A stretch of DNA of 63,013 nt, filler included, from Perkinsus chesapeaki ATCC PRA-425 (lineage: Eukaryota; Protista; Perkinsozoa), in the NCBI GenBank assembly GCA_013115145.1. It is 8 parts of 8 records of this genome, joined end to end, with 100 filler letters (N's around TTAATTAATTAA, not from the genome) between each part and the next. Parts side by side here need not be neighbours in the genome. Positions count along the whole stretch, not along the records: positions 16,946 to 35,697 come from JAAPAO010000655.1; 7 more parts are not named here. The stretch is one strand, 5' to 3'. Below are positions 21,385 to 23,609 of this stretch, piece after piece; position 1 is the stretch's first letter; the number at the start of each line of letters is the position of its first letter. The translations under genes and the position numbers were made by a program. The notes under the pieces are model-generated. The model was not told the origin of the DNA, did no database searches, and saw nothing but the letters and a program-made list of their open reading frames with translations.

Positions 21385-23609
21385 ATGTCACGGACCTCTA
21401 CCTGTTGTATTCATACAACTGCGGTATTGTTTGTTTTATCTTTACTATCAATATCAGTATTATCGATAAGTGATATACCAGTAATCGAATTAAAGGATAC
21501 TTCAACTAATAATATATTGCAATATGCTATAACTACTGATGGTAATAATAACCTCATATAATAACATTTATGTACATAAGTCTCACAGGTGTTTTTACAT
21601 TATCCGATCTTCCTAATCAGCTAGCTAAAGCTTATGACACTTTAGCGATTGAGTTACCAAAGTGTGGAAGTGATGGGATTGATGGTAGAACTGAAGAATT
21701 AGGTGACGGTACACTCAGGACTACATATGCACAAAGTAAGTTAATATAGATGATCGTATGAGGCGAAATAAAAAGGATAATAATACATATCTGCTGTTGT
21801 TTATATAGAATCTATGAAAGCTACCCCTCACTTCCTCCAACGTATATGTGATAGTAGCGTTATAGAGTCTGTTAATTATATACGAACACAATTAGAAGGA
21901 ATTGGTAATGAAGTGGCAAAGACTATTGATAAGGTATCAGTATTACTACTAATAAAAATAATAATAGTTATATCTTCTATTGTATAGGTTATAACGTTTA
22001 ATACTCCCACTACTACTATTATAGATTATGATGGAATGGATGTCAATAGTGTTGTTGATATTATAAAAGCTGGATATGATAATCATCTTGATCATATACA
22101 TGTATATACTAAAACAGATAATAATATTAATGATAATAAAGTAGATTGGAAAGATGATAATAGTGTGGAAGGGGTACTGATGATGATAGTAGTAGTAGTC
22201 TGATTATTATTATTACTAGATACATTATAATACAACTTTAACATTACATATAGATCAAGGAGTATTCTTATTACTAATACTACCTCCTGGTGATTCTAAT
22301 TTTTATTATGAGGATGGTATAACTAATGAACAGGTAATAGGTATTAGATATATTATTATTGAGTACTATGTAATTAGGTCCCACTTAATATACCATCATT
22401 GGATCATAATTATGATGGTTTGAGAGTAGTTGTTCTTATGGGTAACACTTTAAAAAGCTTTATTGGTAGGGATAATAATATTAATACTACAATAACTCTA
22501 TAACATCATCATCATCAACCTTTTAGGTACTACACCATCTATTAGACCATTGCCTCATGCTGTACACATGGATATATCATCGACTACTCCTACTAGATTG
22601 GTATTTGGTCGAATGTTCCTATTGCCACCTAGTTTTAAAAGTCCAATACCATCATTGAATTCAATAACATTCCAACAATGGACACAAGCTGCTATGATAC
22701 CTAATAATGATGATACTGATGAGATAGCATTCTCTAAAAGGAGATTAGGTAAGCAACAACAACAACAATAATAATAATAGTGGATAATCATAACATTATT
22801 TATATTCAGCTGGGGAATGTAAAGCTGGTGAGATATATTGTTGGATGCAATGTATGGCAAATACTTGTAATAGTAATACTGAAATGCCTGTATGTTGGGA
22901 TAAAGCTACTAATGAATTATGTCCAGTAAATGATGGTTTACATCATAAAACATGTGGTGTTGAATGTGCCATTAAACCCTCTTCTGGTAGTGGCGGTGGT
23001 AATGGTAGTAATACAGTACCTACTCCAAATCCTAATGCATTCTGTACTGGTTCAACAGCTATGTTTATGAATGGTTTTAATTGGATGGGTAATCCAACTA
23101 CACAATGTGTTATATTATTTATACCAACATGGATACTTGATACACCATGGAAGTTTGCTGTTGGTTGTATAGGTGTATTATTATTAGGTATGTTGGTTGA
23201 AGGTATACTATGGGCTAGACGTCGTTATCTTTATTATATTACTAATCGATGGGTTCATGCTATTATAGGTGCATTAGCATTTGGTATTAGTGTATCTATT
23301 GCTTACTTAGCTATGTTAGTTGTTATGACTTATAGTTGTGAATTATTCCTTTGTTTATGTTCCGGTTTGGTTATTGGACATTTTATATTTGGTAATGTTA
23401 GGCAGAGTATTGGTGAGTCAGCTGAACCATGTTGTGGTGATACTACTGTTGTTAATAACACTACTGGTGGTATTGTTAGAAGATGCTCTTCTGATTGTGC
23501 TGGTCAAAGATTAGTTGCCACTACGGGCGGTGACACTTGCTGTAATAATAAGTTGGATGATAGTTCCTCCTCAAATAGTGGTAATGGGGGTGCAACAACA
23601 GGAGCATAA
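21385..23609 (+). CDS. Signal peptide + 2OG-Fe(II)-oxygenase-like domain + Cys-rich linker + Ctr copper transporter
   Basis: IPVIEL...GVFTL start, LHIDQGVF (HxD), LPHAVH and RLVF in the N-terminal half. Phase-1 intron 22749-22809 joins in frame to CWMQCM... and Ctr motifs MFMNGF, three TM helices, YLAMLVVMTYS (MxxxM) and GLVIG. Confidence 0.75.

Follow-up and report, generated by a model that had tools for sequence, protein, structure and literature searches.

An Oxygenase-Fold Domain Very Probably Fused to a Ctr Copper Transporter in Perkinsus chesapeaki

Introduction

Transporters of the Ctr type take up only Cu(I), so that any cell that depends on them has to reduce or release copper on the outside beforehand. 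At the outer face of the membrane, Cu(I) is normally supplied by reductases; how this is accomplished in marine protists is unsettled (PMC9502191). A gene of Perkinsus chesapeaki ATCC PRA-425 raises the question of whether a domain with an enzyme fold has been built into such a transporter. The gene lies on the plus strand at positions 21385–23609 of a stretch of 63,013 nucleotides (hereafter the window), which consists of eight parts from eight records of assembly GCA_013115145.1 joined by filler letters; the part that carries the gene (16946–35697) comes from JAAPAO010000655.1. A first-pass annotation, made from the sequence alone, had described the gene product as an oxygenase-like domain on the secreted side joined to a Ctr copper transporter. 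Below, we consider whether the two halves form one protein, what the N-terminal half is, how far the architecture extends beyond Perkinsus, and what the domain might do for copper uptake. On our reading, the gene probably encodes a 612-residue protein made up of a signal peptide, a 2-oxoglutarate (2OG)-oxygenase-fold domain with an intact 2-His-1-carboxylate site, a Cys linker, a Ctr domain with three predicted transmembrane segments (TM1–TM3), and a Cys-rich tail.

Results

One Reading Frame for Two Domains

Raw sequence and three-frame translation give a single gene of eight exons, with a coding sequence (CDS) of 1839 nt or 612 codons. Its seven introns are 44–73 nt long, each bounded by GT and AG, and AT-richer than the exons. 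All motifs named in the first-pass annotation sit where it had placed them. The two introns that it had drawn, 22174–22219 and 22749–22809, both have GT-AG borders and keep the frame, but the gene has seven introns and not two; the former is spliced in an RNA contig, whereas the latter, although phase 1 as proposed, has no such coverage. Exon-by-exon tblastn covered residues 52–599 of the 611-aa P. olseni protein P0006 in order. Here and below, searches and fold prediction used single exons or database proteins.

The N-terminal domain and the Ctr domain very probably form one fused protein. They are fused in relatives, namely in the P. olseni orthologue P0006 (611 aa) and in the paralogues P0009, P0010, and P0011. 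The genes for P0006 and P0009 likewise have eight exons, and all their seven introns sit where those of the window gene do, including the phase-1 intron that follows the motif RRL (or RRM), and the counterpart of intron 7 keeps its position and phase at locus L002 of P. olseni and at the paralogue locus L001. Within the window gene, conserved coding sequence for GECKAGEIYCW separates the acceptor at 22810 from the first Met of exon 8, and this one exon encodes both the Cys-rich linker and the Ctr helices. The YCW..CM linker and its Cys positions are kept after the oxygenase-like domain in fused and Ctr-less family members alike. Furthermore, open reading frames (ORFs) with both domains occur in transcriptomes: MMETSP P0172 (627 aa; N-terminal domain at 60–377, Ctr at 441–556) and MMETSP P0055 (618 aa), while the transcript-derived EukProt Trinity sequence P0005 spans the domain joint. 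The fused orthologue and paralogues, the shared intron position, the transcript ORFs, and the exon common to linker and Ctr together support the fusion proposed by the first-pass annotation. For the window gene itself this evidence is indirect, because no RNA contig spans intron 7, but it is strong overall.

RNA contigs from two studies, one of them a marine metatranscriptome, lie on the gene without mismatches; they were drawn from small 454-type runs. Four of the seven introns are spliced in these contigs (intron 1 in three runs, and introns 3, 4, and 6), and contigs of runs X3 and X4 start 8 nt 5′ of the ATG, at 21377. A contig of another run (X2, record 6) has 33 nt in common with exon 8 (22826–22858) and encodes KRRMQSACSDGEIYCWMQCM, in which KRRMQSACSD, the end of the oxygenase-like domain in P0009, is joined in frame and intron-free to GEIYCWMQCM. 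At the paralogue locus L001, a 317-nt phase-1 intron sits exactly at the joint that this contig shows spliced. The contig matches P0009 at 19 of 20 residues; compared with L001:5970–6340 (GC 47%), it has 10 synonymous differences in 60 nt, all towards A/T, and exact and fuzzy searches of L001 did not find the loose-end string of X2. The X2 transcript is thus a second, AT-rich copy of paralogue P0009 and not L001 itself, with a homeologue, a haplotype, or a mixed culture as possible origins. At the RNA level, it speaks for a fused form of a sister gene.

In public data, exons 2–7 are reproduced by the P. chesapeaki protein P0008 (FOL47_009420, an NCBI hypothetical protein of 307 aa), which was found by searching with the N-terminal part of one P. 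olseni Ctr protein and is named IPNS-like Fe(2+) 2OG dioxygenase domain protein in UniRef. This model is cut at both ends: its start Met (21570) lies inside intron 1, and its 3′ end is a read-through of intron 7 (...RRLGKQQQQQ, then the stop codon at 22769–22771). The Ctr half of the locus is unannotated or split off in the public annotation.

An Oxygenase Fold with a Predicted Metal Site

The N-terminal domain of about 300 residues almost certainly has an oxygenase fold. An AlphaFold2 model of this domain (P0008:4–300, from the 93-sequence alignment A4) reached a predicted local distance difference test score (pLDDT) of 85.8 and a predicted template modelling score (pTM) of 0.87. Foldseek returned 238 PDB matches for it at E ≤ 1e-3, the best 50 of which are all IPNS-like 2OG oxygenases. 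Alignment with VIA-align gave Z 20.3 against rice GA2ox3 (6ku3), with a root-mean-square deviation (rmsd) of 3.2 Å over 241 residues, Z 20.1 against hyoscyamine 6-hydroxylase, and Z 17–19 against DAO, T7H, ACO2, and IPNS, with a coverage of residues 1–297. At the sequence level, the A4 profile matched PDB entry 9hdl at E 1.7e-4 and, at E 0.008, deoxypodophyllotoxin synthase; the HxD motif and the distal His were in register. Neighbours in the ESM Atlas bear PF03171, and those by structure include a 642-aa Ctr cluster, mostly of diatoms. A model from four sequences was poor (pLDDT 58) and improved with 93, although Foldseek already indicated 2OG oxygenases at that stage; the four-sequence profile had only chance matches among PDB sequences.

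The residues expected of an active site are retained throughout the family. H130, H166, D168, G170, G216, H234, R247, and M253 (P0008:4–300 numbering) are invariant in the 93 N-terminal domains, and H132, Y134, G251, and P257 are nearly so, as is a DG..R..A motif. In the His-rich stretch HLDHIHVY, the second His is invariant in the family and the third His and the Tyr nearly invariant. The double-stranded beta-helix (DSBH) fold with its His/Asp/His cluster, as the first-pass annotation had it, is therefore upheld by the model, by the structural Z of 20.3, by the invariance of the triad in 93 relatives, and by its alignment to a solved enzyme, and a metal is likely to be bound at this predicted site. 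In this class of enzymes (ANS, ACCO, DAOCS), the Arg and Tyr that are kept here bind the 2-oxoacid. The HxH of strand beta-I and the Met that ends the Arg strand are family-specific; going by the general fold, they should share one surface towards the interior and might form a second site of the His2Met type. The domain represents a divergent branch of the 2OG oxygenase superfamily and falls outside the Pfam family in its present definition, and the ectodomain is under strong purifying selection.

The Ctr Half and Its Orientation

Exon 8 matches PF04145 with E 2.7e-13 and 51.1 bits, against a Pfam cut-off of 25.3. This match, together with MLVVM...GLVIG at 23313–23378, substantiates the earlier assignment of a Ctr domain with an MxxxM motif; the full signature, MLVVM-x12-GLVIG, lies in TM2–TM3. 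Hydropathy analysis gave one single and one double-length hydrophobic segment, with MFM about 25 residues before TM1. Across 30 fused proteins, M437, M439, M521, M525, G538, and G542 are invariant, and of the six Cys in the cytosolic tail, which include a PCC motif, C561 is invariant and C560 nearly invariant. A word-index search with exon 8 returned P. olseni Ctr proteins at 70% identity.

By the Kyte–Doolittle scale, residues 5–36 form an N-terminal hydrophobic segment. The N-terminal domain contains a conserved Cys pair, of which C81 is nearly invariant and C118 invariant (P0006 numbering). Ctr proteins have an established N-out topology. From this rule, the signal-like N-terminus, the Cys pairs, and the 10-Cys linker, we infer that the oxygenase-like domain lies on the extracytosolic face, where the linker Cys would be of the disulfide type.

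A Large Family in Other Protists

A profile of four Perkinsus sequences was run against 1.84 billion representatives and recovered 523 cluster representatives with E ≤ 1e-3, of which 149 reached E ≤ 1e-10; few members of the family have a known taxon label. Roughly 41 of the 148 best representatives contain Ctr, as judged by a local hidden Markov model (HMM) and the signature motif, and Pfam agreed in all five cases checked. The architecture does occur in other protists: the fused members that are named or sourced include the thraustochytrid protein P0028 (Hondaea fermentalgiana 'High affinity copper uptake protein 1') and transcript ORFs from MMETSP and EukProt. When the 30-protein alignment A5 served as the query of a word-index search, nearly all of the proteins retrieved were from Perkinsus.

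Fused and Ctr-less members largely separate by their N-terminal domains. In a quick maximum-likelihood (ML) tree of 93 such domains, a branch with 95% support in the Shimodaira–Hasegawa-like approximate likelihood-ratio test (SH-aLRT) parts 62 rows, 61 of them without Ctr, from 31, of which 23 have Ctr, and the Ctr label changes nine times on the tree versus 21.4 times in shuffles. On the fused side, each of the eight rows without Ctr is short (345–467 aa) and may be a cut model, like P0008.

Many Ctr-less relatives have a different partner. In 37 of the 148 representatives, Ctr is absent and at least 220 residues lie beyond the N-terminal domain; alignment A6, which holds 33 of these 37, shows, after the linker, a roughly 200-aa domain in which one Met and one His are invariant. 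Pfam matched DOMON in nine of the 33 (best E 8e-5), and the Atlas features list DOMON in 27 of 30 named neighbours, with AIR12-type DUF568 listed too; a profile of the DOMON-like region had no match among PDB sequences. A hydrophobic C-terminal tail follows the DOMON-like domain in many of these proteins, and in one of the Ctr-less proteins, P0032, a Hint module takes the place of that domain. Many Ctr-less relatives among proteins P0014–P0157 have, in this order, a predicted signal peptide, the oxygenase-like domain, the Cys linker, and the DOMON/AIR12-like domain, and look like an undescribed family of surface redox proteins of stramenopiles and other protists. Accordingly, the oxygenase-like module probably serves these protists as a tethered extracellular unit that is paired either with a Cu(I) channel or with a putative haem electron-transfer domain.

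Fused models are already present in databases under automatic names ('Copper transporter' and 'Fe2OG dioxygenase domain-containing protein'). In the literature on Ctr proteins of Perkinsus and diatoms, on dioxygenases, and on DOMON proteins, of which coverage was incomplete, we found no published description of the Ctr/oxygenase-fold architecture. What is new here is a Ctr transporter with an enzyme-fold ectodomain, in a large family beyond the reach of Pfam.

Discussion

A Possible Role in Copper Uptake

The first-pass annotation had suggested a coupled module for the capture or processing of metal during uptake. The association of the two domains tips the balance slightly towards an ectodomain that is functionally coupled to Cu uptake. 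In a Ctr trimer, three oxygenase-like copies would stand over the mouth of the pore. In the scheme that we prefer, the ectodomain would act as a redox-active metal centre that draws on a donor, such as ascorbate or a 2-oxoacid, to trap Cu(II) or organically bound Cu or to attack the organic ligand of Cu(II); the Cu(I) that it gives off would go to the Cys of the linker and to MFM, and from there into the Ctr pore. The ectodomain would thereby replace or assist a separate reductase of the FRE/STEAP type. This specific reduce-and-hand-over scheme is drawn from domain association only and is highly tentative. The pairing with DOMON in the sister group is the only independent hint of redox chemistry. 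A bolder proposal would be that the ectodomain is a new extracellular metal-processing enzyme of SAR (stramenopile, alveolate, and rhizarian) protists. Its non-haem centre would reduce Cu(II), or free Cu oxidatively from organic ligands, right above the pore, such that a step like that of a cupric reductase and the channel would be combined in one polypeptide; in the sister subfamily, a DOMON haem domain tethered at the cell surface would pass electrons to this centre. We consider this proposal doubtful as it stands.

Alternative Readings

Several observations weigh against a fused transporter with an oxygenase-type ectodomain. At the transcript level, the three contigs that run across intron 2 (X1 record 1, X3 record 10, and X4 record 11) all still contain it, which leads to a TAG stop at 21747, and a fully processed mRNA is therefore not seen end to end; the contigs that retain intron 2 have intron 1 spliced, and the retention may represent slow or regulated splicing. 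No RNA contig covers intron 7 (22749–22809) or intron 5, in the case of intron 7 partly because its trinucleotide run was skipped as a repeat in the read search. At the protein level, hydropathy and general knowledge are the basis on which signal peptide, anchor, and topology were assigned. In Pfam, neither the window exons nor P0008 or P0006 have a 2OG match (PF03171/PF14226) at the curated threshold, and weak PF03171 matches appear in just 6 of the 93 relatives (best E 0.0027), none of them at Pfam's own threshold. The Ser of the RxS motif is missing, the window gene having R-L-V and the consensus R-V-W. Finally, the surroundings of a marine cell are not expected to contain 2-oxoglutarate and Fe(II). 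In a rival reading, which agrees with the public annotation, the locus holds two genes, one for a secreted oxygenase-like protein that ends in intron 7 and a separate Ctr gene that starts at Met 22845 or is joined to a spliced leader (SL) by trans-splicing at 22810. For this reading speak the uncrossed interval 22749–22809, the end of the public model P0008 within intron 7, which also counts against the fusion, and the use of SL trans-splicing by Perkinsus, an SL-like string being present in run X1. Nevertheless, P0008 is unreliable because it also begins inside intron 1, which RNA shows spliced out. The first Met of exon 8 is preceded by the conserved GECKAGEIYCW, which is read in frame from the acceptor; the Cys-rich linker, which here sits in the Ctr exon, invariably comes after the oxygenase-like domain in the family, whether or not a Ctr is present; and the orthologue, the paralogues, and the transcriptome ORFs are all fused. 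Two genes are accordingly very improbable, and on the same evidence we rejected a merger of two genes by gene prediction.

Two other readings accept the fusion and differ in what the ectodomain does. It might be a non-catalytic metal receptor or pseudo-enzyme that, like an enlarged Met/His tail, would do no more than bind Cu(II)/Cu(I) at the His/Asp/His site and at the HxH and Met nearby and then pass it on. Such a receptor would suit the extra invariant His pair and Met, which the general fold places on two neighbouring barrel strands, the missing Ser of RxS, and the Irving–Williams order, an established piece of chemistry by which Cu(II) would out-compete Fe(II) extracellularly. However, the Arg and Tyr that bind a 2-oxoacid are also kept in the 93 sequences and would be needless for a mere chelator, and the DOMON-like electron-transfer domain of the sister proteins suggests turnover over storage; a purely receptive ectodomain thus appears unlikely. 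The same Arg and Tyr, alongside the complete triad, would be at home in an Fe(II)/2OG hydroxylase that works in the lumen of the endoplasmic reticulum (ER)/Golgi or of endosomes/vacuoles on a protein, glycan, or small-molecule substrate, as prolyl and lysyl hydroxylases do. The link to copper would then be indirect or regulatory, for instance through sensing of O2, Fe, or 2OG that gates the channel. P4H, PLOD, and ASPH are general precedents for such lumenal enzymes. In addition, Ctr2-type proteins reside on vacuolar membranes (PMC9502191). Conversely, the nearest folds are the small-molecule oxygenases of the IPNS/DOXC type and not those of the P4H type, the widespread anchor-type relatives indicate the cell surface, and its recurrent partners, a Cu channel and a DOMON-like domain, favour a metal or redox role. 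A lumenal hydroxylase is thus a rather unlikely account, and we retain as the preferred reading a fused Ctr transporter whose oxygenase-fold ectodomain faces the outside.

Exon Layout and Transcript Details

All exons and introns of the gene lie on the plus strand. Exon 1 (21385–21541) runs from the ATG at 21385 through the signal-peptide-like hydrophobic segment to IPVIEL, the start of the mature domain, and is joined in RNA from 21541 to 21589. The splice joint of intron 1 (21542–21588; 47 nt, GT-AG, phase 1) occurs in contigs of runs X2, X3, and X4. Exon 2 (21589–21735) encodes the N-terminal alpha/beta part of the oxygenase-like domain with the motif DGTLRTTYAQ and matches P0008 and P0006. 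It is followed by intron 2 (21736–21808; 73 nt, GTAAGT...AG, phase 1), the position of which recurs in the P. olseni orthologue and also in the paralogue. Exon 3 (21809–21933) contributes the long helix of the N-terminal subdomain and a conserved Cys. Introns 3 (21934–21987; 54 nt, phase 0) and 4 (22174–22219; 46 nt, phase 0), both with splice joints in X1 contig 2, flank exon 4 (21988–22173), which encodes strand beta-I with HLDHIHVY at 22084–22107. The HxD of the metal triad (HID, 22247–22255), followed by QG and LLLILPPGD, is located in exon 5 (22220–22333). Intron 5 (22334–22377; 44 nt, phase 0, GT-AG), at which the frame stays open and RNA contigs give no coverage, keeps its position in homologues. 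Exon 6 (22378–22465) encodes strands of the beta-helix (VVVLMGNTLKSF), including the invariant G216, and the splice joint of intron 6 (22466–22526; 61 nt, phase 1) is found in X1 contig 3.

Exon 7 (22527–22748) provides the distal His (LPHAV; codon 22556–22558), the Arg (TRLVF; 22595–22597), the motif GRM (Met 22613–22615), and the C-terminal helices that end in KRRL. Intron 7 (22749–22809; 61 nt, GTAAGC...CAG, phase 1) marks the joint between the oxygenase-like part and the exon for the linker and Ctr. The first part of exon 8 (22810–23060) comprises the Cys-rich linker, with 10 Cys and the motif EIYCWMQCM, and then a Gly/Ser/Pro spacer. The Ctr core (23061–23399) begins with MFM (23061–23069) and continues with TM1 (about 23142–23219) and TM2–TM3 (about 23250–23399), the MxxxM-x12-GxxxG signature being at 23313–23378. 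The cytosolic tail (23400–23609) contains the Cys motifs EPCCGD, CSSDC, and TCC and ends with the stop codon.

Some contigs stop at exon borders: X2 record 4 exactly at 21735, the 5′ edge of intron 2, and X1 contig 2 exactly at 22333. Trinucleotide runs are present at two places, a (CAT)n-like run upstream of the start codon (21300–21376) and a (CAA)n(TAA)n run at 22748–22791, inside intron 7; the read search passed over both as repeats. Contig 1 of run X1 carries 20 nt, AAACTTGAGCCAAGATGGCT, as a loose end at 21706, turned the opposite way from what the 5′ end of an mRNA would require. We take it to be the reverse complement of AGCCATCTTGGCTCAAG, the core of the spliced leader of the Perkinsus/dinoflagellate type. 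This loose end is probably a library chimera, which fits an organism that uses spliced leaders.

Neighbouring Genes

Downstream of the Ctr gene, and convergent with it at a distance of about 290 nt, lies a multi-exon EHD/dynamin-like gene on the minus strand (23911–26140), with an EH domain ORF at 23896–24060. A minus-strand EHD gene likewise lies downstream of the Ctr gene at the P0006 locus of P. olseni, and most exon matches of the EHD gene are 80–97% identical to that species. This part of the window is AT-rich (GC 0.30–0.45). An origin of the contig from a contaminant was rejected, given the synteny of the EHD gene and its 80–97% identity to P. olseni over most exon matches. Exon GC is 0.26–0.39 on the contig at 16946–35697, whereas it is 0.475 in the orthologous P. 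olseni gene and 0.47 on another P. chesapeaki contig of the same assembly; protein divergence from P. olseni is equal (60%) for both paralogues. Elsewhere on the contig, an unbroken plus-strand ORF of 583 aa (17260–19011) matches DUF6740 from end to end (E 1e-128), and a plus-strand exon at 28514–28966 matches a protein kinase domain (Pkinase, E 2e-24).

Implications

An enzyme-fold domain at the mouth of a channel is a testable candidate for the step of Cu reduction or release outside the cell in marine protists. The architecture is shared by a parasite of shellfish, a thraustochytrid, diatoms, and numerous marine eukaryotes that are not in culture, and for Perkinsus the protein is a plausible factor in nutrient acquisition. 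The family further exposes a blind spot of annotation, as more than 500 clusters of surface-tethered oxygenase-like proteins go unseen by Pfam.

Comparison with Known Systems

The C-terminal half is like that of Ctr/COPT proteins (PF04145; yeast Ctr1/Ctr3 and human CTR1), with three predicted TM segments, an MxM-type motif before TM1, MxxxM-x12-GxxxG, a Cys-rich tail, and a score twice the Pfam cut-off. In those proteins the ectodomain is a short Met/His tail, whereas in the window protein it is a 300-aa oxygenase-type fold plus a 10-Cys linker, some 430 residues in all that are predicted to be extracytosolic. The algal Ctr proteins CTR1 and CTR2 of Chlamydomonas are said to resemble it in having an unusually long, Cys-containing extracellular N-terminus; unlike the enzyme fold of the window protein, their large, Cys-Met-rich ectodomains reportedly consist of repeated motifs of the CxxMxxMxxC type (Page et al. 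2009).

IPNS-like oxygenases (GA2ox3 6ku3, H6H 6tto, DAO 6kun, ACC oxidase 5gja, IPNS 1ips, and PDN2'H 9hdl) share the whole fold of the N-terminal half, including the N-terminal alpha/beta part (Z 17–20, rmsd about 3 Å over 230–245 residues), as well as the HxD...H triad, the Arg about 13 residues past the distal His, and the Tyr on beta-I. Sequence identity is only about 10–14%, however, and the window domain lacks the Ser of RxS but has the invariant HxH on beta-I and the Met after the Arg strand. Moreover, those enzymes are soluble and cytosolic, whereas the window protein has a Cys pair and a predicted signal peptide and membrane tether.

The Ctr-less sisters, in which a DOMON-like domain with one invariant Met and one invariant His precedes a hydrophobic C-terminal tail, recall AIR12/DUF568 and other DOMON domains, which carry electrons extracellularly by means of haem b, AIR12 being anchored by glycosylphosphatidylinositol (GPI). 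The domain is absent from the window gene, the Pfam matches of the sisters are weak, and haem binding is putative. Lastly, Fre1/Fre2 and STEAP provide Ctr with Cu(I) on the outer side of the membrane (PMC9502191). This is the step that the window ectodomain may perform or assist. These reductases are separate flavocytochromes of the membrane that draw on cytosolic NADPH, whereas in the window protein a putative non-haem centre is fused to the channel itself.

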